DNA from: Macrostomum lignano
Lineage: Eukaryota
Length of the DNA stretch: 64,000 nt
Assembly: GCA_002269645.1 (NCBI GenBank)
Contig: NIVC01000180.1
Location: 186,001 to 250,000, forward strand
Direction of reading: 5' to 3'
Positions 1-43,600 of the stretch are shown here, piece by piece (the stretch's first letter is position 1; every line of letters starts with the position of its first letter). The notes under the pieces are model-generated. The model was not told the origin of the DNA and made no database searches. It saw nothing but the letters and a program-made list of their open reading frames with translations. Position numbers and translations under genes: made by a program.

Positions 1-179
1 CGAGGCCAAACAAATTTCAGACATTAGTCAAGGGAGAGTTGGGCGCATTGTCACTCGGAGACCGCTACAACGCGAGGCCAAACGAATTTCAGACATTAGT
101 CAAGGGAGAGTTGGGCGCATTGTCACTCGGAGACCGCTACAACGCGAGGCCAAACAAATTTCAGACATTAGTCAAGGGA
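1..179. repeat. 72-bp tandem repeat (~2.5 copies, truncated by window start), probably intronic in the ferlin gene
   Basis: CGAGGCCAAAC recurs at 1, 73 and 145. Confidence 0.9.
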
Positions 180-329
180 AGGCAATGGACTATCTTGTTG
201 TCAATGACTACTAGAACTCGATACGAGCGTAATAACAGAGAAATCGATACTGAGTCATAGAGGAGGAGTAGCTAGAGGCCCCATCATAAACGTATTATGA
301 GCTAATTATTTTAATCCATTTGTCTTAAG

Positions 330-3022
330 CTCCTCTTCGAAACTTTACAAAGGCCGCATCATAAAGTCGAACGAGCCACTTGCCCTGAAGGCGCTGTGCA
401 GCTGGGAGTCCATCACTGGAGTACCGCTGGTCCCCGAGCACATCGAAACCCGGCCGCTGTTCACCCCGGAGAAGCCGGGCATTGAGCAGGGCCGCATCGA
501 GATGTGGGTGGACCTGTTTCCCAAGGAGCTGGGCACCCCGCCAGCCGCTGTGGACATCACTCCACGACAGCCCGTCAGCTACGAGCTCCGCGTCATCATC
601 TGGGACACCGAGGAGGTGCCGCTGAACGATACGGGCGGCCTGACGGGCGAGGCCAGCTCCGACATATTCGTCAAAGGCTGGATGAAAGGCCTCGGAATCG
701 ATGACCAAGTAACGGATGTCCACTACAGGTGAGACAAAGGGCCAAATTAGGTTAACTATACTAGCGAAAATCAAGAAGCACGTCATTTAACTGACGTCTT
801 GAGCCCGCTCTAGACCTCCCAGACATACATTTACATGTGTGTACAATTCTCTGTAAAAAAATTCTGATCTAATGGTGAAAATCGGTTGAGCCATTTTTGC
901 TACAGTCAATCGCATACCTAGATAAATACGTTCATCTTTCGTATCTGCAAAACGAGAGATTGAGTAAATTTGGATTTCTCTTGCAGGTCTCTCAACGGCG
1001 AGGGCAACTTCAACTGGCGCTTCATCTTCAAATTCGACTACCTGAAGGCCGAAGACAAGATCGTCTACCGTGTCAAGGACAGCCTGTTCGCCATCGACGA
1101 GGAGGAGAAGAAAGCCATGTGCCGGCTCAACCTGCAGGTGTGGGACGCGGACATCGTGTCCTCGGACGATTTCCTCGGCGGTTTGGAGCTGTCGCTGTCG
1201 AAGATGCCGCGCGGCGCCAAGTTGGCGAAGGCCTGCGGCACCTTCCTGCTGGACAAGGACAGCGGCGTGAAGACGTTCTCGCTGTTCCACAACAAGCGCT
1301 GCCGAGGCTGGTGGCCGTTCCTTGGCGAGGCAGACGAGGACAGCAACGAGAGAGAGCTTGCGGTGAGACAGGGCTGTCGCATGCATTCTGTGGACAAGTG
1401 GGTTTTGGAGGGCTGCGGGCACCGTGGCTCAACGCCTTTGGCGACATCTCGTCCCACAGCCAGCTCTCCCACAGCCCGTCCCACAGGAATCGCATGACAA
1501 TTCGCTGATAAATGTTTGCGTGCACACTAGCACGATGTGGCCGCGTACGGAATCGAACCAGGGGTGGTGGTCACGTTAGATCACGCATCAGACGCTCTGT
1601 CCCCCCCGGATGGTTAACTTTTCATTGAATGCGAAAATTGATTCACCATTTCTACACTTTGCATTCAGGGCAAGGTCGACGTAGAGCTGCAGCTGCTGAC
1701 CGCGGCAGAGGCGGAGGCCAACCCGGCCGGCCTCGGTCGGGAAGAGCCGCAGCCGATGCCACCGCCAAAGTGAGTCCGTCTGTCTGATTCTCTGTCACCC
1801 TATCAAGAGATAGTATCACCCTATCAAAAGTGTCCCAGAGTCGCTTTGAGTAGGTGGTGGTGCAAAAGTAACTTTGCAACAGAAACATTAAGCGAAATTT
1901 GATTGTAAAAGATTTCAAGTAAAAATCGTCAAGCTCTCGATACACGAGCTCAAATAGTCTTCTGAATCTAGAAAGATATTTTTTGCATTTGTGTCTCTAT
2001 GTGACTCAGGTACACTTTGAAACTAAAAATTTATAAATTAAAACAAAGATATTTATCCAGAAAGCTAATCTACAGAGCACGTGACTCATCAGTCATTCGG
2101 AATTTGCACCAGTCGCAGTGCCGTCCAAGCCAGTAATTGAAAGCCAGCAGACCAAAAGCAACTGCTGAAGTAACACCACAAAGTGCACGAAGCAATTATT
2201 ATAACATTAATTCAACAGCTCGCATCGCCACTGCTTATCGTTCGCAGCCGCCCAGAGACCTCCTTCCTGCGGATCCTGAATCCGCTCAAAGTTGTGAGGT
2301 TTCTTGTTTGCGTGAAGTACCGCACCCTGCTGCTCAAACTGCTGGCAGTGGCCCTGCTGGCGGCCCTGCTGGTGCTGTTTGTGTACAGCAGCCCCGGCTA
2401 TCTGGCCAAGAAGATGATCAACGTCTGAAGTCAGTCTGTGCACCCCGAGCAGGGTGCCGTACTCGGACTCTGTTGTTCCGTGTTACACATTTACTCATTC
2501 ATTCTCGTTGTTGCTTGAATCTCGATGTTGTCCTGTATTTGACCTCCTCCTCATTCTGAACTCAGCGGTCGCACAAGAAAAACAACAATATTTCCCATCC
2601 AGAAGCTTTACGTTGTGAAAGCATTCAATTTCTAGTGACTATTACATGGATCCCATTCGCTACCAGCATGTTTTTCAAGTTTGCCAGTCCACCTGGCCGT
2701 GACAGCTCCGAGGGCTGCGGCAGAACTTCAGAACTTCTGCGGCAGTAGTTTTACCTCGTGAAGCTTCAGTTTGCTGTCGTTAGTTAGCCAATTACACCTT
2801 CACGAATGCAGTCGATACTAAATGAAAAATGCGATTACTTTCAGCCGACCCGAGTCCACCTTCATGAACATGCTGAACCCGTTGAAGGCGCTGGCGCTGA
2901 TGTGGCACAGGTTCAAATGGGTGCTCCTGAAGCTGCTGATTGTCAGTCTCATTGTGGCGATACTGGCGCTCTTCATCTACTCCAGTCCCGGCTACATAGC
3001 GAAGAAGATCATCGGAGCCTGA
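330..3022 (+). CDS. OTOF: Otoferlin-like (type II) ferlin, 3' exons encoding the last C2 domains and the C-terminal TM anchor; 5' part lies outside the window
   Basis: Exons 330-728, 987-1362 and 1669-1769, then 2248-2428 or 2845-3022. All junctions are GT-AG and phase-compatible. Ferlin motifs: [75 protein letters not shown], PGYxAKK. OTOF versus FER1L6-type orthology is not resolved. Confidence 0.88.
1538..1610 (-). mobile_element. tRNA-derived fragment (SINE head or tRNA pseudogene) in a ferlin intron
   Basis: Minus strand reads ACAGAGCGTCTGATGCGTGATC...CCTGGTTCGATTCCG...GGCCA. It has a B-box (GGTTCGATTCC) and a D-arm/anticodon-like segment but no complete cloverleaf. Confidence 0.45.
2248..2428 (+). 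CDS. Ferlin alternative terminal exon A (TM anchor, ends ...[14 protein letters not shown])
   Basis: TTCGCAG acceptor. Phase 2 joins AA|C CGC CCA (N-R-P-E-T-S-F). Hydrophobic TM segment, then stop. Confidence 0.85.
2845..3022 (+). CDS. Ferlin alternative terminal exon B (TM anchor, ends ...[14 protein letters not shown])
   Basis: TTTCAG acceptor. Same phase 2 join (N-R-P-E-S-T-F). Paralogous to exon A. ATTAAA at 3081. Confidence 0.85.
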
Positions 3023-3467
3023 TGATAGCCAGCACCTTTTCAGCGCCATTTCTATTCTATATTTAAAAGTAAACTCAGCAATTAAACTTCAACTTTCGTG
3101 TTCCACTCAGTTTTGCGCCTGGGAGCGGTCCCAATGGGATTTCTGCCGCGCCCGATCTTCCTGCCCATGTTTTTTTCTATTCCAACCCCGCATGGATAAC
3201 GCTTTAAACTCGTGTCTCGAGCATCTCACCAATGTTTTGTGAATTTGTTAATTTGCCTTCCCTGAGCTCCCGCCGGTGAGAAAAGTTACAGAAGCCTATT
3301 AAAATGTACTTAAATCTCAGTTGAAATCTCAGCAAATTTACTGCAGACTGCTTGTTGCTGTACACTGCCACATCTTTGGTGGGGGCTTTTATCATGAAAA
3401 TGTTTTTTTCTGTAAACCACGTCCTGCTTGCTTGATAAGATGCTACATGTGAAACCTAGCCTAACAT

Positions 3468-3672
3468 CCCCGCAGGCCCCAGCATCAGGGAAGCCCTACA
3501 ACCCCGCAGACCCCACAACCCCGCAGACCCCACCATCCCGCATAATCACAACCCCCGCAGATCCCACCACCCCGCAGATCCACCACCCCCCAGACCCCAC
3601 CACCCCGCAGACCCCACCACCCCGCAAACCCCACCACACCCGCAGACCCCACCACCCGCAGACCCATCACCC
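3468..3672. repeat. C-rich degenerate minisatellite, unit ~17-18 bp (CCCCGCAGACCCCACCA)
   Basis: Repeated CCCCGCAGACCCCAC motif read directly from the sequence. Confidence 0.85.
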
Positions 3673-4241
3673 CATAGATGTCGTCACTCCAGCACGGACA
3701 GAGATGGACAGCGACAGCAAGACAGAAAGAATCCTCTGTAGATTTTCCGACAGAATCTCTATATTTACATTTTAACTTTCTGGTTAATTGTTTCCTTTTC
3801 CACTGTCAATTTTCCTATGCGATTCCGAGCATTGATCTCATGATATCATTCACTTGCTGTCATCACAGTATTGCTGAGCATTTTCGCTGGTTATTTCTGC
3901 TTCAAAGAGAATATTTTAAATTTTCTTCAAATACAATTTACATGTAAGCAGTTACATTGCTGTACAGGGTAAATAAAATCGAGAACACATCGCTTCTAAA
4001 AATGTGCAAAATTTACTTTTCAACTTTTACACAGGGCAGGTCATGTTTGAGTGCATAGAAGCTAAACTCTTTAAAAGCGTTCAAATTTACATGTTTAAAT
4101 GTAAAAAATATGAGATTCCTGTGAAGTTAATTCAGCATATTAGAAAAATGCCAGCCAATTTCAAAACTGTAATTTATAGAATGCTGAACGAACATAGTCA
4201 GGAAGTGCTTTCATTTGCAAAAGGCCCCCAGATCAACCCGT

Positions 4242-5333
4242 CTAGAGCCCGTTCGATCGACGTCCGCCTCCAGTTCGAGTCGGCGCTCTGCGGCCTCGGC
4301 GCCCCATCGCTGCGGCCTCCGCCTCTGCCGCCTCCCTGGCCGCCGCAGCCGCTGCCGCCGCCTCGGCCGCCGCGGCCGCCGCACCGGCCGCCACGCCGCG
4401 CCGGTAGCTGGGGAAATGCTGCTCGCTCCACAGGTCCAGCGCCGAGTGCAGCAGCTGCTGCGACGTCCGGCAGCCGCCTCCGCCGATGGCTTTGACCAGG
4501 ATTTCTGCGTACGTCTCGCCGCGGTTCAGCGGCAGAATCGGCGGCAGAATCGGCGGCTTTGCGGCCTCTGGCGCCGTCTGAGGCGGCAAATTTGAGAACC
4601 GAAGCTTTGCTGCTGCGTCCCTGCGCTGGCGCCCCGCTGCCTGCTGCTGCCGCGCTCGCCTCCGCTCCGCGCGTTCCACTTCCGCTTCGTCGAGTCGCTG
4701 TCTCTGCCGGAGCAGCTCGGCGATCTCAGCCAGCCCCAGGCGCCTGGCCAGCATGTAGGGCGTCAGGCCCTGACTGTTGAGGTGCTCAACCGAAGCTCGC
4801 TGGCGCAGCATTGCCCGGAGCAGCACGCCGACAGTCTGAGGGCAGCCCGAGGCCACGGCCAGATGCAGGCAGGTCTGGCCCTGCGAGTCTCTCCGGCGCC
4901 AGTCCGTCTGACTTGACGCTCCGGACGCCGCGGACAGTCGGAGGACCTTCTCCAGCTCCGCTGGTCGCCCGAGAGCCGCCGCCCAGCTGATGAGGTCGCG
5001 ATCGAGCGCCGAGTCCCGGCCTGCCAGACCAGCGCCGTTGTCCAGCAGCAGGTCGAAGGTTCTCGACCTCGCCGCCTGGTCGTCCGCCAGCAGCGCCATC
5101 ATCAGTGGAGTCCGGCCGTCGTCTGGGTGCTGGAAGCCGCGCGGCGGGCCGGTGAGTCGCAGGAGATGCCCGACATCGGCGTGACGGCCCTGCGCTGCGG
5201 CCAGGAACAGCTCGCGAAGTCCCTGGGCTGCCACCGGCTGAGGAATATGCGCCGGCGCTATGGACAGCGTGTGACGCTGGCGCACCGCATGCTGCTGGTT
5301 GCCATGGGGAATCTGCGATGCAGCAGCCTTCAT
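4242..5333 (-). CDS. Ankyrin-repeat protein (~4-5 ANK repeats, then a coiled/low-complexity C-terminus), 363 aa, apparently single exon
   Basis: ATG at 5333. ANK-like segments GRTPLMMAL, DSQGQTCLHLAVASG and NSQGLTPYMLARRLG. GC-rich coding composition. Confidence 0.8.
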   Translation of the reverse strand: MKAAASQIPHGNQQHAVRQRHTLSIAPAHIPQPVAAQGLRELFLAAAQGRHADVGHLLRLTGPPRGFQHPDDGRTPLMMALLADDQAARSRTFDLLLDNGAGLAGRDSALDRDLISWAAALGRPAELEKVLRLSAASGASSQTDWRRRDSQGQTCLHLAVASGCPQTVGVLLRAMLRQRASVEHLNSQGLTPYMLARRLGLAEIAELLRQRQRLDEAEVERAERRRARQQQAAGRQRRDAAAKLRFSNLPPQTAPEAAKPPILPPILPLNRGETYAEILVKAIGGGGCRTSQQLLHSALDLWSEQHFPSYRRGVAAGAAAAAAEAAAAAAAAREAAEAEAAAMGRRGRRAPTRTGGGRRSNGL

Positions 5334-6562: not shown

Positions 6563-9500
6563 ATGAGCTTGATTCAGTGCCGCTTGCAGCTGCTCATGCT
6601 GCTGCTGCTGTGGGCGTCCCAAGCGGTTGGGAAGCATGCCAGCTCCAGGACTCGAGTCCCGAACTACATTCGCAACATTTTTCCGGGACCGGATCCGCAC
6701 TTCAGAGTGGCGCCCAGCGACCAGAAAGTGACGGCCGGGGACAAGTTTGCTCGCTTCCACTGCGTCCCGGCGGGTGCCCAGAAGCTGCACGTGATCTGGC
6801 GGATTCTGAGTGAGTTCACAGAATTCGGATTCCTGCATTCACTTTCAAATGAATGATAAATTTGGCGGCATGAATCAAGCGAGCCCGATATCACCTTCTG
6901 TCGACGGAACAACTAGGTCCCGACGGAGAAGTTGTTGTTGGCGATCGTCACCGCGTGTCGAAAGACGGCACCCGGCTGACTATTTTCGACCCGATGGAGT
7001 TTCACGACGGCTTCGAGATCCAGTGCTATCTGAACACGCCGTTCGCTAAGCGGCCTCTGGTAGCTTCCGCCAAACTGTTTGTGCGACGGCCTCGTAAGTC
7101 AATTTGGAAAAAAAGTGCAATCAACGAATACGCTCGCACATAAGATCATTGGCAATAAACTCAATTTTCTTTCTCAGAACCTCCTGAGATTGTCGAGTCT
7201 CCCAGATCCGGAAAGCACAAGCGGGGCTCCCGGGTCGTTCTGGAGTGCGCTGCCCAGGGCTGGCCTCTGCCGAGAATCGGTTGGGTGAGTCGGGCTATGA
7301 CCTTCATTTAGTGGATGTTTCTGTTTAGGGTTAGGGCTACGCGTTATCCACTGAACGTAGGATGTTACAGCCCATGTACGTTTAGTGCTTGTGGATAGCT
7401 ATAATGACGCTGCAGGCACCCCAACCAGAGAATTTATTCGACTGCCAGCTTGCTGATGGCGTCGCCGAGGACATAGTGGGCGTGGCCTAGGTTTGCACCC
7501 AGGCCCGGAAGGCGGCCTATAGCGCTGCTCTCGTTAAAAACTAGCAGACTGTATTTTTGTAGGTGGTGTTAACTTGACTTTTAAAGCTCAAAGAGTTTCC
7601 TTTTTTGAAGAAACAAACAGGGACGCATAGCAGTATTCTAAAATATTGAAATATATATCTATGAAATTGCTGTAAAATTACGAGTATAGAGAACTATAGA
7701 TTATAAAAAAGGTTGAGTTCGGTTATCAAATCAGTTTCCGCGATGGACAAGTCTTCAATCAAACTGCTGGCCTTGCCGACCACCTTGCAGATATTCGAGT
7801 CGAGACGGTTCAAAATCCGTCGATTCTTCGACGCCAACAAAGACTATCGGGACTACATCAAGGAGCCGAACCGACTCATCATTGTCAACATGAGCCCCGA
7901 GTCTGAGGGCACGTACACGTGCATAGCCTACAGTAGGTACGACCACTCCAAGATCAAAGCTTACGTCGGCTACGATCGTAGAAGTGAGTTAATCAGTTGT
8001 ACTTGTTTCTTTCAACAGCTTTCTCTAACACTGTGGAGTTGCATCGGTTCGTTCGTATGTGATACAATAGTTTTTGGTAGCAAGTTGATAGCTAGGGCCT
8101 CACTTGGGTCGACTGTAATGCTCGTAAGTTGTCAATTTTCAGTCTGGAACTGAATATTGGTATCCTGTCGAATAGAATGTCTCAGTCGTTACTACAGTTC
8201 CTAATTTCAGTAGCCCTTGCCGGCCTGCAGTCTGAAAATTATGTTTCATTGAGAACGCAATCGATACACCACCAGGAGTCCGCCGGCCTAACGTCCGCAA
8301 GATCGTGCAAACTCTGCGCGGCGTCTACCGCCACTACCGCAATTACGCGCGCGATGCCGAGCAAAAGCTCGGCCGCAAGGCCACCTGCAACATGGAGGTG
8401 TTGAACCAGTTCGGCTGGCTACCCCGTCCTAGCCGTCGCATGGACCGTATGACTCTGACTTATGACTACCTTCTGGCCATCCTGGAGCGGCATCGAGTTC
8501 ACCCGAACAGTGTCAAAAGTCTTCCCGGTGAAGCTCTGAACATCGACGTGCCCCTGCTGCAGTACATCAAGTCCAAACTGAACTGCTCGAGCTCGGCTGT
8601 CCCGGCCCCTGATTGCAAACGCTATCCCGAGTTCCTGTCCAAGTATTCAGCACCCGACGGTAGTTGCAATAATCTTAAGCGACCGACCTGGGGCCAGGCG
8701 GGTCGCGGATTTCAGCGTTTCCTGCAAAGCCAATACGAACTGGGAATTAATCTGCCCCAAGGTGACAGTCACACCTGTATTTACTCATAATTAGCAAAGT
8801 TTGAACGAATCATTTTCATAAATATATTACGGCATTGGCATTGCAGGGTACCAGAAGCATCGCAGATACGGCGGGTTCCGTAAGCCATCGGCACGCAAGG
8901 TATCTCTGCACGCGCTGCGCAAGAAGCATTACCCAGTGGACAAGGCCATCAGCCAGGTATTCAACTACTTCGGCCAGTTTTTGGATCACGACATTGATCT
9001 GACTCCTGGCGCCTCTACGGATCGTGGACTAGTGCACAACTCCGACTGCAATAAGCACTGCCGGGTGGACCTACCATGCTTTCCCATTCCAGCGCCACGA
9101 GGTACCCAGACCACTACTCATTATTGCACCAGCTGTTGTTGTGTCGCTATGGACTAATTAATAGCTGATTTGCTTCTAGCAACTTAATTTTTTAAAGGCA
9201 ATAATCAAGAGCAAGTGTTTCCATTTAAAGTGTATTGGTCCGAAAATATCATCCCTCAGACGACCCACGCATGAAGGGCTGCATAACCTTCAAACGGTCG
9301 GCCGCCTTCTGCTCCAGCGGCGAGTTCAGCAAGCACGAAAAGTGCATCCGCCCTCGCGAACAGATCAACCAGATCACTAGCTTTATCGATGGTAGCGCCA
9401 TCTACGGCAGCAATTGCGAAGTACTCAACTTACTGCGCGATTTGAACTCACCTTCAGGGTTTTTGAAAACTAGCCGGCCAGCTCCAGGCCAGATGCTCGA

Positions 9501-11167
9501 TCTGCTACCCATCAGCGTCAACGGCGTTCCCACCGCCTGCGGCCGTAACCGGGACTCGCCTAATGCCAAATGCTTTAGCGCCGGCGATGCTCGAGCGAAC
9601 GAGTTTGTTCTGCTGACTGTGTATCACACAATGTTTGTGCGGGAGCACAACCGTATTGGACACGTTCTGCACTCGCTCAACCCGCACTGGTGCGGGGACA
9701 AAGTGTTTTACGAGACTAGGCGGATCATGAGTGCGCTAACACAGCAGATCACATACAACGAGTACCTGCCAGTGCTTATTGGCGTGACAGGAATGAGAGA
9801 AATCGTGAAGCCTTACAAAGGCTACCGCTCGGACGTGAACCCCAACATTGCCAACTGCTTCGCCACCACTGTGTTCCGCATCGGCCATACCATGATATCC
9901 GACTTTTTTGCTCTGTTGGATAAAAAGTACCACCTGGAGCAGGTAGTGCAGCTTGAGCATGGCCTCTTTGCTCCACACATAATATCAGCTAAGGGCATCG
10001 ACTCGCTGGTTCGCGGTGCCATCACTGTGGCCATGAAGAGCCGCTCCAAGGGCCCTGCGTCGATGTCACGAGGCACTGTGGACCGCTTGTTTGAGCTCAC
10101 CAGCAAAGTCGCCTCCGATCTTGCCGCGTTAAACATCCAACGCGGTCGCGACCACGGCCTGCCGTCCTACAACTACTGGAGACAGCTGTGCGGCCTCTCC
10201 TGGGCCACTAAGTGGGACGACTTGGCGGGCGAGATTAGCAGCCCGGAGGCGCTTCGCAAGCTTGAAGAAGTTTACGGATCCCCGCGTAAGTCAAAGATTT
10301 TTCTGCGATCCTTCTGATTTCGATAAAGCGATTTTTAGATCATGTTCCTGACGCCATGATGTTAATCTTTTTTCACAGTAAACGTTGACCTATTTCCGGC
10401 GATCGTGCTGGAAGACCGAGTGGATGATTCGTTGGTCGGTCCAACAGCTCGCTGCGTTCTGGCCTTGCAGTTCCGGGCTCTGCGCGATGGAGACAGGTTC
10501 CAAAGAATTATAAGCAATTCTAATTATTTTACAGATATTTTCTGTTCGTTCTCTGCTTTCTGAAAAGCATCCTCAAATTTCAGATTTTGGTATGAAAATC
10601 CGGGTCAGTTTACGCCGACCCAGCTGCAGGAGATTCGGCGGTACACTCTTTCGAGACTGATCTGCAACACGGTTGAGACAATCAACGAGATCCAGCCGCA
10701 GGCTTTCTACACTCCGCGGCACAAAGCGGACCTCGTGCCCTGCTCCGAGCTGCCGGACATTGATCTCAGCGCTTGGAAGGGTCAGTTATTTATCAATTCA
10801 CTAGACTTAACAGAATGTATTGCAAAGAGCCTCGCACGATTGCATTCACTGTTTTAAAGACAGTGAAAGTTTTTGACAGTGAAAGTTTAACTGTTTCTGT
10901 ATATATTGCTACCTAACAAGCTAAATTTCTGTTAAACAAGGCAGCTAATAATTGTTGCTATAAATCACAAGCACACTCGTCAATCATTTGGCTACGGTTG
11001 AGCCAGGGTGGTTGCACATCCGTCCGGAAGCAGGCAAAAGCTACCTATTGCTGTCGAACTCACTTATTTTAGATTTCGACAGGCGCAAGAAGTGCATGCC
11101 GAGGAACCCTTGCAGCGGTGCCAGGGGAGAATCGGAGGCTGCGGATGGCAGTCAAGTCAACTATTAA
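6563..11167 (+). CDS. Secreted heme peroxidase, peroxidasin-like: signal peptide, 2 Ig domains and an animal peroxidase domain (~966 aa)
   Basis: Exons 6563-6809, 6917-7093, 7178-7284, 7791-7983, 8276-8761, 8847-9101, 9260-10285, 10379-10496, 10584-10780, 11073-11167 (2901 nt, in frame, all GT-AG). Motifs: DGSCNNL, GQFLDHD (distal), [13 protein letters not shown] (proximal His), [22 protein letters not shown]. Ig C...W...GTYTC pattern. Confidence 0.88.
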
Positions 11168-13138: not shown

Positions 13139-16100
13139 ATGACAACTCAGTTGAGTTTAGTATTGGCTCTAGTTACCTGGACTCAGCTCCCTCTGGTAAT
13201 TGGACACAGTGACGTTCCACTGCCCAAGCTCCGCAGCCACACATTCAGCACAGCTGCGAACCGGTCCAATGAGAAACTGCTGATCGAGATGCTGGTTGAC
13301 CGATACAGGAGCACCGGCCTGCGTGGGCGGCCCGTCTTCAACGCCAGCGACACAGTTTCAGTCGCCTTTGGCCTGGCCATCATTCAGATTTTGGACCTGG
13401 ACGAGAACCGGCAGTTCCTGCGCACCAACTGCTGGCAGCGCTACTCCTGGACAGACCCGCTGCTGGAGTGGGACTCTTGGAACAACACCAACTTCCAGAA
13501 CATCACGCAGCTCCGCCTGTACCCCGAGCTGGTGTGGACGCCGGACATTCGGCTATTCAACTTCGCCGACACGCGGCTGAAGGAGCATCGAATGGCTCGG
13601 GTTGTGGTGTACTCCAGCGGCAGCGTGTTGTGGGTTCCGCAGAGTCTGTTCAAGAGCACCTGCCCCGTGGAGATCGAGTACTTCCCGTTCGACACCCAGA
13701 CCTGCGACCTGGAGTTCGGGTCGTGGACCTACGATGTGACGCAGATTAACTTGACGTGGTTTGGATTTGAGGTAAGTGAAATTCGCTAGTTTAGAGGCGC
13801 GAAAACAAATATATATTGTCTCTTTCATTCAATATCAAAAGAACCTTTATTCGATGAACGGTCAAATAATTTTCGACACAAATGAAAAGTGAAAACAGTA
13901 AGGCATTGGCAAAGAATCCCGGTTAGCGGGATTGGCTCTTTTTTGGTCTCAAACTGCAAAAGAAACTGGCTGATTCCAAAAGGCTTCAAAAGAATTCAAA
14001 GGGCTTGACCTCGGGTCGATGAGGAAGGCTTTGAATAGACAGTGGAAAGTCATGGACTTGGCCTATCAAAGTCGGCATTAAGTCTCCTGGCTTGAAACTC
14101 TTCTGTGCTTATGAGGAAGTGAGATGACAAGAAACCTTGTAATAGCATTTGAAAATTGGAAAATATTGGGATGGAGACGGCTTTGATACCAAATTTTCAA
14201 TGCGGAAATGCATAGAAAGTACCGCTTTTATAAAACTAAAAATTTCACAGCTAGCTCTTATAAACCACTGCTACTAACTCCAGTTTTTCCGCATTGAATT
14301 ACTTGCTTTGAACTAGTTAAGCCAGCTGCAGAGAAAAACAGCAGCAAACGGTGATTGATGGAGTTCTGTTAGTTGCCAGGTGCGGTTACTGCGCTTGTCA
14401 ATCATGTCCCCCTGACCACCTGTCATCGCGTCTTCTGCGCAAGGCTGTGCAGAACTTCAGTTCAAGACGCGGACTCGGAGCAGCGGAACACTGCAAGGAT
14501 TCCCCTGGGAACTGGCCTCTCCAGTTCGGGCTTCGCTGCAGCGGAAGGCCGGGCCAGAAATTGTGAAGCCCTCCGTCGCACCTTTTGCCTGAAATTTCTA
14601 AGAAAACCATTAAATCTGATGCGTCAGAAAGTTACCTTAGAAGCATTCAGAAAAAAAGTAAATATTCTATATTTAGCTAATGGCTATTTAAACTTCTTTC
14701 GTAATGGGATGCTCCATTTGGAAATCCTGTAAATTGCACTAAGACCTGCTGCGCAGTACATTGCATCGTCAGCGAGGTTGGGATTTTTCGGGGGCTAAAT
14801 TTGTCTCAGCTCGCGGATTAAGTTCAGACAAAAACACATGATTTTAAAAATTGTTTTCTTTGAAATTCAGAAGTTTTAAAGGGGAGATACGAGCGTTTTG
14901 GTCAATCCGGTGCTAAGAAAAAGCAGAAAGCTCCCCATTTTGCGAGTTTGGCGTCCAAATGTTCAGGGAGAGCCAAGATGTATCGCAGAATGAGTCTCAA
15001 TGATGGCGCACTCGATGGCCTAAAAAGCACGTGAAACAGCAGCCACTGATAGGGCCTATTCGGTGTTCGATCGGAGGGGCCTGCAGTCAAAACAAATAAT
15101 GCGGGATTCCGCTTGGCCAACAAGTGGAACCCAGTGGGAAAGGTTGCCCCCCCCGTAGATAGCAGCACAGGAGCGGGCCCGAGATCAAGGAGCTGCCCAC
15201 CGAATCAGCGCAACACTATTGGAAAGTGATTAATCTCCAGCTGCACATCACAATGCACGCAACAGGGGTGCAGTGGCTCTCCATCTCTGATTATGTCTGT
15301 TTATCCGATCCCCAACTGGCCCACTCTCTCGACCCAGTCGCTGCATTATATGCCTCGCTGGCTCTCTGGGCCTGCCCAGTTTCCTTGCCTTCGGAAGTAA
15401 GAAGCGATCCACTTGTGCGTGGCTGGCGGCATGGGAAATCCAAGCCCCGGATTCCTCGGGCCGCTTCCTTGTCGCGAAGGCCAGTAAAATACCGGCAAAG
15501 CTCGCACAGACAATACAACAAGGTGGGCGGGCTAACTTGGATTGCGCCATTTTTGTAGAGGGGAGACGGGCTAAAGGTAAAAATATCTACCGCAGGCTCT
15601 GCAGGCAAAGCCATTGGCCAAGCCGAGAATTGCCTGACATGTGACCTCCCGAAACTATTTGAAATAATATGCTGTTAATCTTTAGTTCTCCGATTCCAGG
15701 CTTCTAAGTTACTTTGCCTGTCTCTACTAAAAAGATTACGTAAAGTTATGTAAAATAGTTCCTATAGTCTCTTTTAGCTCCCATGTAACTGTGAAAATCT
15801 TTAAACAGAAGAGCCAGTAAGAAATGTGAATTTTTTTGCAATAATTGTACGCAAATCAGCTGCCCCATCATTAGAAGCTGCTTCGTGGCTGAAAATCCGA
15901 AGACAAGTAAAATTAGCAAATTGGGTCGCTCCCGGCGGGGCCCCAAGATGTCTGCTCGGGACTGACCCGGAAGTGCTCCAGCCCAGACTGCATTATCCAA
16001 AGGTCTTCCCAGCTGTGTACGGATAGAATTAGCAGGTTGGCCCTCCAACGCCCCCGGGGACTGTCGCTCGCAGGCCGGACCACCCAGGAACAGTCGCATG

Positions 16101-19047
16101 GAGCAGGGAGAGAATCTGTCACTGTTCCCCCGAAACTTGTTCCCCATATTGGTGCAGTGCAGCGGACCACGCTGCATAGGGGGCCGCATTTATGCAGACA
16201 TAGCGAGTGGCCATACAATTTTCTCATCTTCCAACCCGAAAGCCGGCCCCGAGTGCGACAGGCCCGCTGTGGACCCTCAGGCGGATGATCGGTTGACATC
16301 GTAAATCTGTCCCGGGATAAATGGCTGGCGCTCAGCCCAGCCGCCCCCTACATCTCGATCCTCCAATTGTCAATTTGTGATACTGCGGCTGCCTCAAATT
16401 CAGTCCGGAGCGGAATCCCTGATCTGCGGATAATAAATATATTGTAGAGCTGCGCGGGCCACATATGGCTACTATTATCAAATTACTGAATACGTTTATG
16501 CGAGTATTATTACGCAATTACAAGTTAGGTTTGGTCAATGTTTGGGGTGCTGGTTAGTCAGTTTGCATGGCGAATTTAGACCCCCCTGACGCAAGCCACT
16601 GGTCCCTTGAGCGCGTACACACAGACGCATATAACGTACGCCCAAACTTTCCCATCGGTATGCGCATATTTTGTACAACTCCATATATTGGGAGTTGATC
16701 CTCATGAATTTGAATGAATCGTTCGACAAGCTCCTTCTACCGGCGAGAGCCAGGCGCCGGTTCGCATTTCCGCCAGTAGCATCAACCTGTTTTAAAATTG
16801 ACGAGTATTTGAGTTAATCTTCCACCTGGATTTCCTGCTTGAATCTCTGGACCCAGCATCCTAAATCATCATAAGCTTACAATGGAGGCACCAGCATTGT
16901 GTTTTTACCCATTGACGAGATTTATGGGGCGCAGTTATCGATCATCTCTGCCATTCGCGTAATGACCGTCTCAGGGACAGCAGCAAACTCTGTCTTCATT
17001 GTATTGACCAACCGATGCATCGGATAGCAGTTTTAGCTCGAAAAAAGATGGGAAAACTTCCTGACGAAATTTCGCGATAAATGATTTCGGAAATGACCCA
17101 CTTTCTGACCACAGAACGCAATGAGGAAATCAATGATTATTGGTTTGGCCTGAATGTTATTGAATAATTGAGAAAAAATGGTGCGCCTCGACCTCCGCAA
17201 CGAAGAATCAGTCACTGACAGTTCTACCCGGCGAGTTCTGCTGAGTGCTGAGTCACTGGGTATTATCCTTGCTTAAACTCGGACTCATGCAGCCAGACGA
17301 ATCCAAACCCAATCCAAAGCGAAAGAGAGAAGACAGCTGTATATCTGACTCTGCAGCGCCAACGGCAAGGCCACAATTTAGCCTGGGCTGCTCCACGAGA
17401 CTGCTTTCAGAGGAAAACAGATTGCTAGAGAGTGAAAGCGAAGGAAAGGAAAAAGATGCCCCACCCTGCAGTTTCTGGCGCATGGAAAACTGAAAATTGA
17501 GTTTTGCCTTCATCCCCTTCATCTGGGTAGCTCTGTGATCACAGCAGCGGAAGCCGCAGCTGCCCCCCAGACCTCTCCAGCGCCCCATCTTCGTGCACAG
17601 AGGGCAGCTTGCTCTCCAAGACATTTTCCTGAGATTTGGGGACTGCAAAGTCTCCGCAAGCATGTGTTTACAGGAAAATGTTCCGCTTGCCCGCAGCTGT
17701 AGGCCAGGTCAGGGGCACCCATGCCTGCGAGTCTTTCGGATTGAATTGTTCGTAGCAAAGTGTTTAGGAGTGTCATTTAACCATAATCGGATCCTCTGGC
17801 TCACTATGCATGGTTGATATTTCTATCAGCATTTATCAAGCTCGAAACTTTTCCAGGCTTGAAAGGCAGTCACTTGCTGATGGACTGGGCTTGACTTGAC
17901 AATGCCTGTAACGATATGAACTTTAGAGCCTGTGCAACCCCATCAGTTCCCCCAAGTTCCTTGTCTTTGTTACTGTAAAAAAATCACAGCTATTCAAGTA
18001 CTCTGGATATGAGCAACTGCAACTCAAATTCCATTGCAGTACGAGCCGAATGTGTACGAGCCGAACCCCTACATCGATTTCACCAACTACATCAAGAGTC
18101 CCGAGTGGATCACCGATGGCCAGGACGACTTTCGAATCCGGCCGTCGGAGCGGCGACGCCAGATCCGCTCCCGGATGGAGTGCAAGAACATCACCTTCAA
18201 GGGCCCGGACGGCCGCTCGCACAGTCAAGTTTTCCAGCGCTTGGTGTTTAAAATACGCATTCATAGAAACCCGGATTTCTACTTGTCCATTCTGGTGCTT
18301 CCCTGCATCCTCATGTCCTGTCTTACCTGGGTCATTTTCTGGCTGCCACCCGAGTCGCCAGCAAAGATGCTACTCGGAATGAACATCTTCGTGGCCTTCT
18401 TTATCCTCATGATTCTGCTGGCCAAGACCACCCCCAGTGCAGTGGGCACTTTTCCTAAGATCGGCTACTTCTATGGGCTCAACATGGTGATGATCACGCT
18501 GAGCACCTTTCTAGCTGCCATTGTGCTGAACCTGTACATGCGAGCAGACAGAAGGGGCCGCATGAGTCCCGTGCTGCGGCTGCTCATCCTCGAGGGCCTC
18601 GGCCGGCTGTTCCTCGTCCGTCAAGCGGTTCCATTGAAGCCGGCCACTCGGAAGTTGTTGTCCGAGCGGCTGCCAACGTCCTCAGCTGCTTCTCCGGTTT
18701 CGACGGCCGCCGCAGCCGCTCGCAAGGCCCGCCGGCACCGGCTGGAAGCCCCGCCGGGCGAGGCCGAGCGCGACTCGCCGTTGCTCCCGTGTGGCTGTGT
18801 CGAGCGAGAGGTGCGGGAGATCCGGCAGTTTCTCAAGGCGCACGTCGGCCGGCTGAAGGAGCGGGACAAGCGCAACCAGGCCTGCATGGAGTGGCGCACC
18901 CTGGCCATCGTGCTGGACCGCCTGTTCTTCACTGCCTACGTGCTGTGCATCGTCTCCTCTGTGGTCGTCCTCATACCGAGGTCGCACCAGGCAATTACGA
19001 ACAGCGCAGTGACAAACGAAGCAGACTGTCTAGCGGTGTCGCGGTGA
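13139..19047 (+). CDS. Nicotinic acetylcholine receptor-like Cys-loop subunit, non-alpha, predicted anion-selective (ACC-type), ~546 aa
   Basis: Exons 13139-13771 and 18040-19047 (phase 0; GTAAGT donor, TTGCAG acceptor). Signal peptide, WTPDIRL, Cys-loop CPVEIEYFPFDTQTC, GSWTYD, four TM helices, M1-M2 linker PPESPAK, M4 LDRLFF. Confidence 0.92.
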
Positions 19048-31672: not shown

Positions 31673-34293
31673 TGTATCTCCCAGTTTAATGAAATGGCGC
31701 ACCTGGTGCAATCTCCCAGTCCAATGAAATGGAGCACCTGGTGCAATCTCCCAGTCAAATGAAATGGCGCACCTGGTGCTTACATGTGTGTCCCAGTCCA
31801 ATGAAATGATGCACCTGGTGCAATCTCCCAGTCCAATGAAATGATGCACCTGGTGCAATCTCCCAGTCCAATGAAATGGAGCACCTGGTGCAATCTCCCA
31901 GTCCAATGAAATGGCGCACCTGGTGCAATCTCCCAGTCCAATGAAATGGCGCACCTGGTGCAATCTCCCAGTCCAATGAAATGGCGCACCTGGTGCAATC
32001 TCCCAGTCCAATGAAATGGCGCACCTGGTGCAATCTCCCAGTCCAATGAAATGGCGCACCTGGTGCAATCTCCCAGTCCAATGAAATGGCGCACCTGGTG
32101 CAATCTCCCAGTCCAATGAAATGGCGCACCTGGTGCAATCTCCCAGTCCAATGAAATGGCGCACCTGGTGCAATCTCCCAGTCCAATGAAATGGCGCACC
32201 TGGTGCAATCTCCCAGTCCAATGAAATGGCGCACCTGGTGCAATCTCCCAGTCCAATGAAATGGCGCACCTGGTGCTTACATGTGTGTCCCAGTCCAATA
32301 ACCTGGCGCACCTGGTGCAATCTCTCAGTACAATGAAATGGCGCACCTGGTGCTTACATGTGTGTCCCAGTCCAATGAAATGGCGCACCTGTTGCTATCT
32401 ACCAGTCCAATGAAATGGCGCACCTGGTGCTTACATGTGTGTCCCAGTCCAATGAAATGGCGTACCTGTTGCTATGTCCCAGTCCAATAACCTGGCGCAC
32501 CTGGTGCAATCTCTCAGTACAATGAAATGGCGCACCTGGTGCTTACATGTGTGTCCCAGTCCAATAACCTGGCGCACCTGGTGCAATCTCTCAGTACAAT
32601 GAAATGGCGCACCTGGTGCTTACATGTGTGTCCCAGTCCAATGAAATGGCGCACCTGTTGCTATCTACCAGTCCAATGAAATGGCGCACCTGGTGCTTAC
32701 ATGTGTGTCCCAGTCCAATGAAATGGCGTACCTGTTGCTATGTCCCAGTCCAATAACCTGGCGCACCTGGTGCAATCTCTCAGTACAATGAAATGGCGCA
32801 CCTGGTGCTTATATGTGTGTCCCAGTCCAATGAAATGATGCACCTGGTGCAATCTCCCAGTCCAATAACATGGCGCACCTGGTCCAATCTCCCAGTCCAA
32901 TGAAATGGCGCACCTGGTGCAATCTCCCAGTCCAATGAAATGGCGCACCTGGTGCTTACATGTGTGTCCCAGTCCAATAACCTGGCGCACCTGGTGCAAT
33001 CTCTCAGTACAATGAAATGGCGCACCTGGTGCTTACATGTGTGTCCCAGTCCAATGAAATGGCGCACCTGTTGCTATCTACCAGTCCAATGAAATGGCGC
33101 ACCTGGTGCTTACATGTGTGTCCCAGTCCAATGAAATGGCGTACCTGTTGCTATGTCCCAGTCCAATAACCTGGCGCACCTGGTGCAATCTCTCAGTACA
33201 ATGAAATGGCGCACCTGGTGCTTACATGTGTGTCCCAGTCCAATAACCTGGCGCACCTGGTGCAATCTCTCAGTACAATGAAATGGCGCACCTGGTGCTT
33301 ACATGTGTGTCCCAGTCCAATGAAATGGCGCACCTGTTGCTATCTACCAGTCCAATGAAATGGCGCACCTGGTGCTTACATGTGTGTCCCAGTCCAATGA
33401 AATGGCGTACCTGTTGCTATGTCCCAGTCCAATAACCTGGCGCACCTGGTGCAATCTCTCAGTACAATGAAATGGCGCACCTGGTGCTTATATGTGTGTC
33501 CCAGTCCAATGAAATGATGCACCTGGTGCAATCTCCCAGTCCAATAACATGGCGCACCTGGTCCAATCTCCCAGTCCAATGAAATGGCGCACCTGGTGCA
33601 ATCTCCCAGTCCAATGAAATGGCGCACCTGGTGCTTACATGTGTGTCCCAGTCCAATAACCTGGCGCACCTGGTGCAATCTCTCAGTACAATGAAATGGC
33701 GCACCTGGTGCTTACATGTGTGTCCCAGTCCAATGAAATGGCGCACCTGTTGCTATCTACCAGTCCAATGAAATGGCGCACCTGGTGCTTACATGTGTGT
33801 CCCAGTCCAATGAAATGGCGTACCTGTTGCTATGTCCCAGTCCAATAACCTGGCGCACCTGGTGCAATCTCTCAGTACAATGAAATGGCGCACCTGGTGC
33901 TTACATGTGTGTCCCAGTCCAATGAAATGATGCACCTGGTGCAATCTCCCAGTCCAATAACATGGCGCACCTGGTCCAATCTCCCAGTCCAATGAAATGG
34001 CGCACCTGCATGGTCCAATCTCCCAGTCCAATGAAATGATGCACCTGGTGCAATCTCCCAGTCCAATGAAATGGTGCACCTGGTGCTTACATGTGTGTCC
34101 CAGTCCAATGAAATGGAGCACCTGTTGCTATGTCCCAGTCCAATGAAATGACGCACCTGCATGGTGCAATCTCCCAGTCCAATGAAATGGCGCACCTGCA
34201 TGGTCCAATCTCCCAGTCCAATGAAATGGCGCACCTGTTGCTATGTCCCAGTCAAATGAAATGACGCACCTGGTCCAATCTCCCAGTCCAATG
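31673..34293. repeat. 35-bp satellite (CAGTCCAATGAAATGGCGCACCTGGTGCAATCTCC) with length variants and a 679-bp higher-order repeat
   Basis: Period of 35 seen at 31901 and 31936. Identical repeat-derived ORFs lie 679 bp apart (32697/33376 and 32780/33459). Confidence 0.95.
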
Positions 34294-35279
34294 AGGCCCT
34301 TGAAACCAAATGGGCCACCTCAAATGAAATTGCCCACTACTGAAAACGACCAAATGAAGAATCCTGGCAACGCCCCCTGAAGCGAGTTGGATGCGCGCAG
34401 CTGTCTTATCAATGGCAACACTTACCTGGACCCAGCAGACAGGCTAGCAGCAGAGACAGAGCCAGCAACCTGACCATACTTGCGGTGGTCGGCAAACAGA
34501 TTGCGCAATCAACTTTGCGATTATTCGGCTTAGACCTTGGAAACTTGGAGACAAAGTTTAATACTGACCCTGAGCAGGCTCAGTGCGCTGGTCAACCCGG
34601 CGGAACACGCAGTGCTCAACTCGCAGTTCATTTGCTTGCTTCATATATCAGACAGCACAGAATGCCTGAGCTGTGCTTAATTTATTCTCTACTCGCATTG
34701 TTAGCGTACGTTGCGTCTCAGCTTTCTATTGGTCCATAGCGTCTTCTATAGATAAGCTAAAGTTATACCACTCCGTTGGAGACGCTTGCATTGCTACTTT
34801 AAGTAAGTGAAACAAGAAAAAACTAAAATAATTAAATTAAAAAAACTTTTCAGCGCACATATTATTCCAAAATTATGCTGCTTACGTTTATGCACTTCTT
34901 TAAATAAAAACTTCACGACAGCCAAGCAAGATTTGATTCTCAGAACATAAAACCCGGCGTAAAACTTCACGCCAACACTAGTACGTGATACTCGATTAAA
35001 ATGTTGATCTGAAAAAGCAACTTTTAGGAATTCTGGCAACGTAGAATATACTAGCCTACTTGAAGTAGTAAGGTGACAGCCTGCAACAATTGTAACAGCT
35101 GCGGTGATCACAGAACATCGCTTTTTTAAATTTGTTTGAATCGACTGGTAAAATCTTGAGTAGCTATATTCAATGTTTCTCGTACATTCAAAAATAGGCA
35201 GAGCGTTGAGGTTTCTTGATGAATGAATTTTTATGAACGAGTAAAAATAGCTCCCTTGAGATCAAGGCTCTCACGCAGC

Positions 35280-40609: not shown

Positions 40610-43600
40610 ATGGATCTACCATACTGCGAATTGTGTAGTGAATATTTCTACACACCCATTGACTATAATGCCCACCTTGTGTCCAATGAACACTTGCAAA
40701 AGCTGCTTAGCTTTCCTGTTGGCCAGTCAGCTTCAAATCCTATGCCAGTAGGCTCTAATCAGGAAGATATAGGAGAACTTGAGCTAGTCCAGTCTGATTT
40801 TATTTATGTGTCACAGCACACACCTCAGTTGGCACAGATCTACAAAGTCTATCAAAACCATATCAGACAAATGATACCATTTGGCATGAGCTACATACTG
40901 CTCCTTGATGCTGTTCCGCCAAGCATGTGGCAGGGCATGATCTCAGCATTGAACGAGTTCTCTGTGTCATTTCCACTGTTTGTTCAAAGCGGCTCGTCTG
41001 GTTCTCCGCCTGCTGACAAGCAGCTAATGGACTTTGTATTGGTTGTTGACATCGATCCGTCTACCACAGCCAAGCAGTTGGCTGCTTGCATTGGTACTAG
41101 AGAGACCGATCTTGCACTGATACCCGGCGATTCTGGCTCCGACACCACTGGTTTTCTGCGCATCAGCCACTCCAAACGGCAGGTAGTGCTGGATAGAATT
41201 CGTTCGGCTCGCGTGCCACCTCGTCAGCGTCAGATTGATGCGTTTGAACTGTGGGGACCTCGCGCTTCTTCCTATAGTGGGGCGCGTTCGCCCACTTCAC
41301 CCCCGTTGCAGTCTTCACTTGCCCCATCGCCGAAGCTTAATAAGGATGTGCCTGGACTGCTCGCATCTTTGTCGTCTAGGACAATGAAGTTGGCAGCATC
41401 GTCTACTGCTACTACATCCTCATCTGGCTTGCCACCTAAGTCTGACAGCTATCGCCCTAGCTCTCCCAGCCAAGGTGGCAGGATACCATCTACATCCCTA
41501 GGTAGCAGCGGTCGCGGCCGCAGCAGCAGCAGCAGGCATCGAGCAGACGAGAGCAGAAGCCATCGCGACAGGTCCAGGTCCAAACACGGTTCCGGATCGC
41601 GGCTCCGGTCTAGATCGCGTTCTCGAGAGCGCAGATGCAGCCGAAGCCGCAGTCGCCAACGAGGTCATAGTCGAAGTAGCAAAGACCCCCAGCGAGATCA
41701 GGATCGCAATCGCGACCGAGATACTCGCAGTGAACGCGGCCCCGACCGTAATTCTGAGCAGGGCAGCGGCTATAAGCGTCGTGGTAGGCGAAGTTCGTTC
41801 TCCATGCACGAAGCTGCTGAGGAGCAAGAGGATGACTACGATGAGACGCCGTCTTGCTATCTGGAGCGCACTTGGTCAATCAAATTTGGCGGTATGCCAT
41901 ACCTTCGAATCTCAGGATTCGATCCAGAGGTAGATACAGTCGACTTGGTTGACGCCGTCTGCAGCCGAATTGACGGTATAGAAAGCATTTACGCATTTAC
42001 TCACCCTAAGGGTTTGAGAAAGAGTGTTATTTGCAACTTAAGCGAACAGACACCTATGCCCTCGGTTAATCAAGTCAAGGACAAGATTGGTGACCTGTGC
42101 AGTAACGAGCATCTGTTTGCACAGGACTATACAGAAGAGGCATTTCATCAAATTAAGTTTAATCTTCCGCATACATTTTTCTTTGTCCCCGTAACTAAGA
42201 CGCGAGCCTTTGAGCCCATGTTTCTATTAATTTGGAATATACCAGGCAATGTGCATCCGAATCACATTCTGTACAACATGCGTAGGTCTATGCCCAGCGC
42301 ACGCAGTTTTAACTGTCCGCGACTATTTCGGAAGTCATATAAGCAAGGCCGATTCAAGAGCAACGCAATTCAATTGAACTGTGGCTACGCCGTTGCTAGG
42401 TTCAACAGCTCCGAAGACTGCACCGTGATGATGCAAAGACTCGAAGAAGCTGCCGAGGAGGAGTTGCAGGCTGTATTTTCAAGCGGTAAAGTAAAGTTCT
42501 CGTTCGTATGCATGCAAGAGACTTGCTTGATTCCGCCATTTTCCTTTCCCTGTCACAACTTTCTTCATTGGGACCTCGATTCCGACTGGGATAGCATGTG
42601 TCCACAAGACTCTTTGCCTGACAGGCCTTATGTACCGTTTGTGTGCAACTGCCACACCGACTCCATGCCGATAGCACCACACGCTTCGGCTCTAGATGTC
42701 GTCGCCAAACATATTGTTGAACAGCTCGCGGTCGATGGTCCTTCTGTTGTGTGCCAGAAGTTGACCGAACTGCTTAAGCTCGAGGACAGCTGTCCAAAGA
42801 AATTTGCATGCGTCGAAGACCGGCCCGCTTCGGATCGCGTGCCCCCTATCGAGCTGGGCAGTGTTCAGCTCGGATCGGCCAGTAGTTATTGGTGTTTGCT
42901 TTACGGGCCCGACATATACTACACTGCAAGAGGCTTTCCATTGAGTATGGACTCATTCGAAATCGAAGAGATCGTGAAGCGAACTTGCAAAGCTTACTGC
43001 ATCTACGTGCACATTTATCCTCAGCCGGTGCCTCAAGTGCTGACAAAACAAGCCGTGTTTCGCTGCTCACCCGCTGCGACGAGTTCGTCCATGTTCTCAG
43101 CTACGCGATCGCTTCAAATAAAGCTTAACGAAGAGATGGAGCGCCTCAATATACAGCTGCCGGACAACATTTTTGTGAGCGAATGGAGCTATCGATCTTG
43201 GGACAAGTTCAAGCACTTGCGCCCGTTTATGTTACCATTCTGCCCCGTGCCGAACGGCTACAGGAAGCCGCACTTCATCCTAGTGTGGAACATCAACTCC
43301 GAGTTGGGCAAGCACGTCTTGGTGCGAAACTTCCTTAAGAAGTACCCGCAAGTGCGCAGCGTCTTTTCGCCGCATCTCCAACCAGCTCAGGTCTGCCGCA
43401 ACTGCGAGTTCTGCGTGCTGCGCTTCGACAACCCCGATGATTGCGTGCGCACCTATGCATCGATGCGAATCATGACAGAGCAAGAGCTGCAGGCTCTGTG
43501 CCCCAGGTCAGACATTCGCTTTATCCTGTGCCGCATGGAGGAGACCTGCTACATCCGACCGTTTCTATTTCCGTGCCACAATTTCTTCTTCTGGTACGGC

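Follow-up and report, generated by a model that had tools for sequence, protein, structure and literature searches.

Vertebrate otoferlins can be completed with either of two alternative membrane anchors, and a ferlin gene of the flatworm Macrostomum lignano raises the question of whether a comparable pair of terminal exons is an ancestral heritage or has arisen on its own. The gene is located at the start of a 64,000-nucleotide stretch of the M. lignano genome (assembly GCA_002269645.1, contig NIVC01000180.1, positions 186,001 to 250,000 of the forward strand), which in its full length is referred to as the window and is numbered from its first letter. Here, two tandem terminal exons, A and B, each encoding a complete tail anchor, follow a single splice donor. 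We consider it reasonably probable that the pair stems from an old, lineage-specific (flatworm) tandem exon duplication, supplying two tail-anchor isoforms through the choice of 3' splice site and independent of exons 47 and 48 of vertebrate OTOF. As judged from sequence, the pair is best explained as one instance of a recurrent trend among animals to multiply the anchor exon.

The ferlin 3' end and its two terminal exons

Positions 1 to 3100 of the window hold, on the plus strand, the 3' end of a ferlin gene, the remainder of which lies upstream of position 1, and the part common to both isoforms is represented by its last three exons only. The following features were recognized (a slash marks the splice junction).

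At least 353 to 728, plus strand: ferlin coding exon covering the beginning of the last C2 domain region, its reading frame continuing into the next exons; donor CAG/GTGAGA at 728/729
987 to 1362, plus strand: ferlin coding exon, C2F domain; acceptor ttgcAG/G, donor GCG/GTGAGA; identified by a Pfam C2 match and by tblastn of ferlins
1669 to 1769, plus strand: last common coding exon; single donor GT at 1770-1771, phase 2
2248 to 2428, plus strand: terminal exon A, Cys-type tail anchor; stop TGA at 2426-2428
2845 to 3022, plus strand: terminal exon B, Trp-His (W-H)-type tail anchor; stop TGA at 3020-3022, second TGA at 3023-3025

The 5' boundary of the first exon is uncertain, as either the AG at 351-352 or that at 328-329, with an exon start at 330, may serve as acceptor; in tblastn with full-length ferlins the alignment to this exon begins at 352. 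GTGAG donors and AG acceptors are used throughout the common exons, the translation of which yields a C2 domain (Pfam 28.7 bits, cut-off 22) upstream of the tail, followed by the beginning of the Ferlin_C module. The common donor at 1769/1770 reads AAA/GTGAGT and splits an Asn codon, AA/C, after its second base.

Sequence comparison identifies the gene as the 3' end of a ferlin of the otoferlin type, that is, of the non-DysF type. In a protein search with the 344-residue A isoform, the best matches with full-length coverage (53-57% identity) are otoferlin-like and belong to fishes, a gastropod, amphioxus, Schistosoma and a crayfish, while the dysferlin and myoferlin types reach 42-47%, and the tail motif NRPxxxF..NPLK likewise places the gene with the otoferlin type. 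Closest of all is a fragment from M. lignano itself (P0063, A0A1I8F3E7), with 72% and 63% identity in two blocks and 19 of 19 residues identical over one stretch of the last common exon. This UniProt model ends ...PEPK/SAVAMSLR, the homologous phase-2 donor having been read through into the intron, so that the annotated protein lacks a membrane anchor.

Exon A begins at 2248 after ...ttatcgttcgcAG, with the acceptor ...cgttcgcAG/C at 2247/2248, and exon B at 2845 after ...gattactttcAG, with the acceptor ...tactttcAG/C at 2844/2845. Each spans about 60 codons (59-60 open codons), ends in TGA, and encodes a complete ferlin tail, in which a juxtamembrane segment is followed by a hydrophobic core of 16 residues and by a short end. 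The two peptides are about 55% identical over 58 residues (blastp E = 1e-22). When tail A was compared with the entire window by tblastn, exon B was recovered with E = 2e-17 and the next best match with E = 0.28; no third tail exon was detected in the 64 kb by tblastn and scan, nor did tblastn of ferlins reveal ferlin exons elsewhere in the window. As the window holds no further tail exon or ferlin exon, neither A nor B is likely to come from a second paralog, and we rejected the notion that one of them belongs to another ferlin gene.

The tails differ at their most conspicuous juxtamembrane positions. Tail A carries Cys22 within the motif 'LVCVKY' and is devoid of Trp27, whereas tail B displays Trp22-His23 together with Trp27. 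The hydrophobic core comprises seven Leu and four Ala in A, and four Ile, two Val and one Ser in B, and the last four residues differ as well. Common to both are the PGY motif and the invariant Lys, and in either tail the core is followed by 13 residues. With best 19-residue Kyte-Doolittle windows of 2.98 (A) and 3.10 (B), each tail is predicted to form the single C-terminal transmembrane segment (tail anchor) by which ferlins are recognized. A previous sequence-only reading of the locus had proposed an otoferlin-like gene with two paralogous acceptors behind the phase-2 donor at 1769, each leading to a full transmembrane anchor. All of this is borne out by the protein-search matches, the Pfam domains, the acceptors at 2248 and 2845 and the complete tails, and our translation of both exons matches its peptides exactly.

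Both exons are also well preserved. The spliced C-termini score 96.2 (A) and 100.2 bits (B) against Pfam Ferlin_C (PF16165, cut-off 29.4), with matches extending to profile position 154 of 154. The residues R2, P3, F7, P13, L14, K31, Y47, P50 and G51, which occupy invariant or nearly invariant columns across 19 diverse ferlin tails, are all kept in A and in B. The GC content of third codon positions (GC3) is 0.82 in A and 0.85 in B, as compared with 0.82-0.90 in the upstream exons, and the overall GC content is 0.39-0.46 in the flanking intron and spacer. Between A and B, the non-synonymous divergence (dN) is 0.45 and the synonymous divergence (dS) about 0.97, giving a dN/dS of about 0.46. The exons agree at 61% of their nucleotides, with no identical run longer than 8 nt, and no similarity was found between the introns preceding the two exons. 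The dN/dS ratio, the short maximal run and the dissimilar introns together suggest an old duplication under net purifying selection and free of recent homogenization. Recent gene conversion between A and B was rejected on the grounds of the 8-nt run and the dS close to 1. In sequence terms both exons look functional, and a neutral relic of such age is not expected to do so.

Comparison with vertebrate OTOF and other tail exons

Mutations in exon 48 of mammalian OTOF cause deafness. This exon encodes the cochlear anchor (TMD1), in which Ile1967 is deleted in patients, while the brain anchor (TMD2), with a long Leu block, is specified by exon 47, which ends in a stop of its own (PMC10394277). 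Among the vertebrate sequences, the Leu-rich anchor corresponds to the 'FIWHTYRW' type (P0140, P0142), and the anchor with ...KWLIIKIV... to the 'YLICTRYKW' type (P0039, P0178). Both alternative transmembrane exons of vertebrate OTOF and the motifs that the sequence-only reading had attributed to them are thus real, and the arrangement could be read directly from genomic DNA in the fish Dissostichus mawsoni (L081).

L081, 13149-13328: W-H-type exon
L081, 15279-15461: Cys-type exon
L081, 17657-17845: third tail exon, strongly diverged, located behind the W-H and Cys types

The third fish type also ends the vertebrate sequences P0012 and P0190 and hence seems to be used. In a mammal-like metagenome contig, a W-H-type exon (L078, 1373-1519) contains an in-frame stop and a deletion and has probably decayed, and at a flycatcher locus (L006) only the Cys-type exon is present within 13 kb upstream. 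Loss of the W-H exon in some amniotes is possible.

The resemblance to the window is considerable. In both cases two exons of one ferlin gene lie in tandem behind a phase-2 intron of identical position, and each is made up of a juxtamembrane segment, an anchor and a stop of its own; one copy has Trp-His at the column where the other has Cys. The position of this intron and its phase, AG/C CGN CCN ('SRP'), are moreover the same at all tail exons, in the window as well as in fish, bird, annelid, cestode and metagenome loci. The parallel is real as an analogy, but it does not extend to the order of the types: in vertebrates the W-H-type exon lies upstream and the Cys-type downstream, whereas in the window the Cys-type (A) comes first and the W-H-type (B) second. 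A further difference is the third tail type of fishes; tissue-specific use of the exons is documented for mammals.

In a columnwise check of A and B against the vertebrate consensuses, column 22 alone (Cys versus Trp) backs a pairing of A with the Cys-type and of B with the W-H-type, and two other columns each favor the opposite pairing. At column 22 the codons are TGC (Cys) in A and TGG (Trp) in B, a single transversion apart, and short echoes such as that between 'LVCVKY' and 'LICTRY' can consequently stem from a one-nucleotide change of Trp to Cys and not necessarily from ancestry. W-H is the commonest state in invertebrate tails; dozens of metagenome loci display it, as do Capitella, Batillaria, Bradybaena, Cherax and a beetle. 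Cys at this column is found in vertebrates, the crinoid Antedon mediterranea, the hemichordate Glandiceps talaboti and beetles (Callosobruchus), and also in several lineages with a single tail exon (L001, L070/71, L085); it has originated there repeatedly, in lineages that are not related.

Metagenome contigs were scanned with a tail profile, yielding 72 loci, and annotated genomes were inspected as well. Wherever genomic DNA could be read, tandem tail exons make use of the same phase-2 acceptor and have their own stops. Multiplied tails were found in the following cases.

Cestode Dibothriocephalus latus (L082): two copies, 83% identical, about 1.1 kb apart
Annelid-like contig L023: two copies, about 87% identical
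Arthropod-like contigs L019-L021: two to four copies
L012: two copies, one very divergent
Teleosts: three tail types, with the Cys-type doubled in Conger (P0001) and in a Liparis-like fish (P0126)
Branchiostoma belcheri KAI8499151.1 and KAI8499153.1 (P0125, P0124): three and two tails fused, all Trp-type; gene models only
Glandiceps talaboti RefSeq otoferlin-like X2 (P0184) versus X1/X3/X4/X6 (P0290-P0293): differing only in the tail; gene models

The two B. belcheri models suggest an amphioxus array of about five tail exons, all of the Trp-type. Capitella teleta, Bradybaena, Paramuricea and a flycatcher have just one tail exon, the range covered being the contig or as much as 10 kb to either side. 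Copies within a locus are usually more similar to one another than to copies at other loci, which indicates that duplication of the anchor exon is recurrent and mostly lineage-specific.

Two of these cases deserve a closer comparison. G. talaboti, like M. lignano, has an invertebrate otoferlin-type gene with two alternative anchors that diverge right after ...DKPN/RP. Both of its tails, however, belong to the Cys-Val type ('FLICVRLKR'), and neither has a closer relative than the other, the two grouping together in 399-464 of 500 bootstrap replicates; a Cys/Trp pair as in the window is not present. D. latus, a flatworm, likewise possesses two open tail exons with stops and the same acceptor phase, but both of its copies read 'LIKYKLKW', with neither Cys nor Trp at column 22, and because they are 83% identical the duplication appears to be much younger than that in M. 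lignano.

An exchange of tail anchors by alternative splicing is known from VAMP-1A and VAMP-1B, where it alters the target membrane while the cytosolic part is unchanged; VAMP-1 is unrelated to the ferlins, and its alternative ends are not tandem paralogous exons. Full-text searches of the literature, a ferlin phylogeny (PMC2923515) and the work on misfire (PMC1853072) included, brought up no paper in which alternative anchor exons are described for an invertebrate ferlin. RefSeq has implicitly annotated such anchors already in the hemichordate.

The relationships of the tails were addressed by neighbor joining, with 49 tails and 200 bootstrap replicates, and with a wider set of 61 tails, two distance models and 500 replicates. 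In the smaller set A and B group together in 98 of 200 replicates, as opposed to two of 200 for A with the vertebrate Cys-type and none of 200 for B with the vertebrate W-H-type. In the wider set A with B is the most frequent single grouping (130/500 and 172/500). Across all trees, the support for A with B ranges over 26-49%, and that for the cross-phylum pairings with vertebrates over 0-1%. Congruent with this, A and B share E4, L29, S49 and A54, states that are rare (10% or less) among 39 non-flatworm tails, and both have lost W9 and F10, the loss of W9 being common to A, B and the neodermatan flatworm tails (Schistosoma, Trichobilharzia, Dibothriocephalus). Pairwise identity does not discriminate: A reaches 54% with B and 47-57% with many other tails. 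The trees favor a lineage-specific duplication only weakly. In the exon-level tree that the sequence-only reading had called for, A with B is the commonest grouping, at less than 50% support, and the clustering of A and B with different vertebrate exons, Cys-type and W-H-type respectively, is excluded.

Origin of the pair and its predicted use

Two other accounts of the locus have to be weighed. It is possible, but in our view unlikely, that A or B is a pseudo-exon, an unused relic of the duplication, and that only one anchor is made. Neither junction is backed by RNA, the polypyrimidine tracts are modest at both acceptors and poor at B (aaatgcgattactttcag), no canonical poly(A) signal follows A, and the mammal-like contig L078 illustrates that a W-H-type exon can decay. 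Such a relic would be difficult to reconcile with the state of the exons: despite a dS of about 1, both retain open frames, the invariant residues, the 16-residue core, a homologous stop and a GC3 of 0.82-0.85. They furthermore score above the Ferlin_C threshold through the last profile position and diverge with a dN/dS of about 0.46, whereas a neutral sequence of 180 nt and of that age is expected to have lost such features.

The other account, which we judge quite improbable, holds that a Cys-type and a Trp-type exon stood side by side already in the bilaterian ancestor or earlier, and that one copy was lost in most lineages. Orthologs of A would then be vertebrate exon 48 and the tails of crinoid and hemichordate, and those of B exon 47 and most invertebrate tails. 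The identical intron position and phase in all animals examined and the clustering of Cys-type tails from vertebrates and several invertebrates in the neighbor-joining tree would fit such a history, and pairwise identity leaves the hypotheses unseparated. Several observations weigh against the reading that we favor. The A with B grouping stays below 50% bootstrap support, in an alignment of 59 half-hydrophobic residues that cannot resolve deep nodes, and, depending on the distance model, A is joined with the Cys-Val tail P0128 in 20-108 and with Ambulacraria in 7-54 of 500 replicates. A also has more than the Cys in common with some distant Cys-Val tails, in which likewise one Trp or both are missing. 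C22-V23, the loss of W27 and W9, and basic character at 24 recur in the tails of P0016 ('LLCVRFRSLLIK'), Antedon and Glandiceps ('LICVRLK') or P0128 ('ILCVQYKW...ALLTALLVLFIYASPGYL'). As for the rare states common to A and B, they might stem not from shared ancestry but from parallel adaptation of the two tails to identical partners in the cell. Finally, no transcript evidence was obtained for either junction, and no tail-bearing protein or contig of this species or a close relative was found: the protein search with the 344-residue A isoform reached 56-57% at best, with the tail-less P0063 as the only M. lignano match, a profile of both C-termini gave three distant matches, and HMMER with an A and B tail profile against 1.84 billion representatives returned 293 matches, none of them macrostomid-like.

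What speaks against a shared ancestral pair is the inverted order of the types, the single column that separates the pairings while two columns each favor the opposite, and the low bootstrap support for the expected groupings (2/200 for A with the vertebrate Cys-type, 0/200 for B with the vertebrate W-H-type and 7-54/500 for A with Ambulacraria). The Cys is one transversion away from Trp and appears in beetles too. Where an invertebrate locus has two copies, as in the cestode, the annelid-like contig, amphioxus and the hemichordate, these agree in type and are mutually similar, and just one tail exon lies within the ranges given above in Capitella, Bradybaena, Paramuricea and several Cys-type lineages. 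For the same reasons (reversed order, an echo of one column, and the bootstraps against the vertebrate exons), the proposal of the sequence-only reading that the dual-anchor switch predates the split of protostomes and deuterostomes is not supported, and its alternative of a convergent or independent origin gains support as part of a wider pattern of recurrent tail-exon duplication. There is only a slim chance that exon A goes back to an ancient exon for a Cys-Val anchor, also seen in crinoid, hemichordate and vertebrate otoferlins, of which it would be a copy that survived in protostomes; if so, the bilaterian ancestor would have possessed a switch between Cys-type and Trp-type, followed by repeated loss, reordering and renewed duplication.

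For the use of the two exons, the following mode of operation may be envisaged. The single phase-2 donor at 1769/1770 could be joined to either of the two tandemly duplicated terminal exons. Use of the proximal acceptor (2248) would generate isoform A, with Cys in place of the interfacial Trp, the second Trp gone and a Leu/Ala-rich core, and use of the distal acceptor (2845) isoform B, with the W-H motif that typifies the tails of invertebrates and a core rich in Ile and Val. Each exon would deliver the whole C-terminal module, namely an amphipathic juxtamembrane segment, the Lys, the core, PGY and a 13-residue lumenal end, and the cytosolic C2 machinery would be common to both isoforms. In tail-anchored proteins, insertion and destination are governed by those features in which A and B differ, namely juxtamembrane segment, core composition and terminal residues. 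As a tail anchor doubles as a targeting signal, the switch most likely changes membrane insertion, destination or lipid environment, and the juxtamembrane Cys that replaces Trp might in addition create a site for S-acylation.

For the 3' end of the transcripts and the choice of exon, two further features may be of relevance.

3068 to 3086, plus strand: candidate poly(A) hexamers AGTAAA (3068) and ATTAAA (3081), 46-59 nt after the exon B stop, predicted by hexamer scan
2316-2331 and 2448-2463, plus strand: arms of a 16-nt inverted repeat, 15 of 16 positions complementary, the former in exon A and the latter 20 nt past its stop; from a sequence scan

Because the hexamer scan detected neither AATAAA nor ATTAAA between the stop of A and exon B, mRNAs containing A probably continue to a poly(A) site beyond B. 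The event would thus amount to a choice of 3' splice site, and B would serve as 3' untranslated region whenever A is chosen, with one terminal transcription unit being the simplest model. No strong donor site (GTRAG) is present between A and B, where only GTGAAA at 2615 and GTGAAG at 2758 were noted. The inverted repeat closes a hairpin over the transmembrane-coding part of exon A, with codons 24-29 forming the arm within the exon. A 181-nt fold at this position has a z-score of -2.5, none of 200 shuffles folding as well, and the arm motif occurs at these two places only in the window (0.02 expected). It is possible that the hairpin influences exon choice or 3' end formation.

The surrounding window and the ferlin family

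Downstream of the ferlin gene the window contains several other coding regions.

4242-5333, minus strand: open reading frame of an ankyrin-repeat protein, convergent with the ferlin gene
9235-10317, plus strand: open reading frame of an animal haem peroxidase, best database identity 44%
13139-13789 and 18034-19047, plus strand: two exons of a Cys-loop ligand-gated channel, in neighboring open reading frames
40610-43828, plus strand: neighboring open reading frame of 1072 residues without Pfam match

The window is also unusually rich in minisatellites, located at 1-179 (a 72-bp unit repeated 2.5 times, at the window start), at 3464-3673 and in about 20 further arrays up to 59915. Among them are a 17-bp CCCGCAGACCCCACC-like array, which follows the ferlin 3' end and precedes the next gene, and, at 31676-34294, a 35-bp array extending over 2.6 kb. 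On the opposite strand of intron 2, at about 1530-1600, a motif resembling a tRNA T-arm (ggaatcgaacc) is present; ARAGORN called no tRNA in the window, and the stretch may be a tRNA-derived repeat.

Aggregated, the M. lignano pair would add a new example to a known kind of switch, and a broader comparative pattern emerges from it. Genes of the otoferlin type have multiplied their anchor exon repeatedly and always at the same intron, in a macrostomid-like flatworm, a cestode, annelid-like and arthropod-like contigs, amphioxus, a hemichordate and fishes. Since the duplication recurs, anchor switching may be generally useful as a means to redirect one Ca2+-sensing machine to different membranes or cell types, and the natural anchor pairs would lend themselves to swap experiments in tractable invertebrates.

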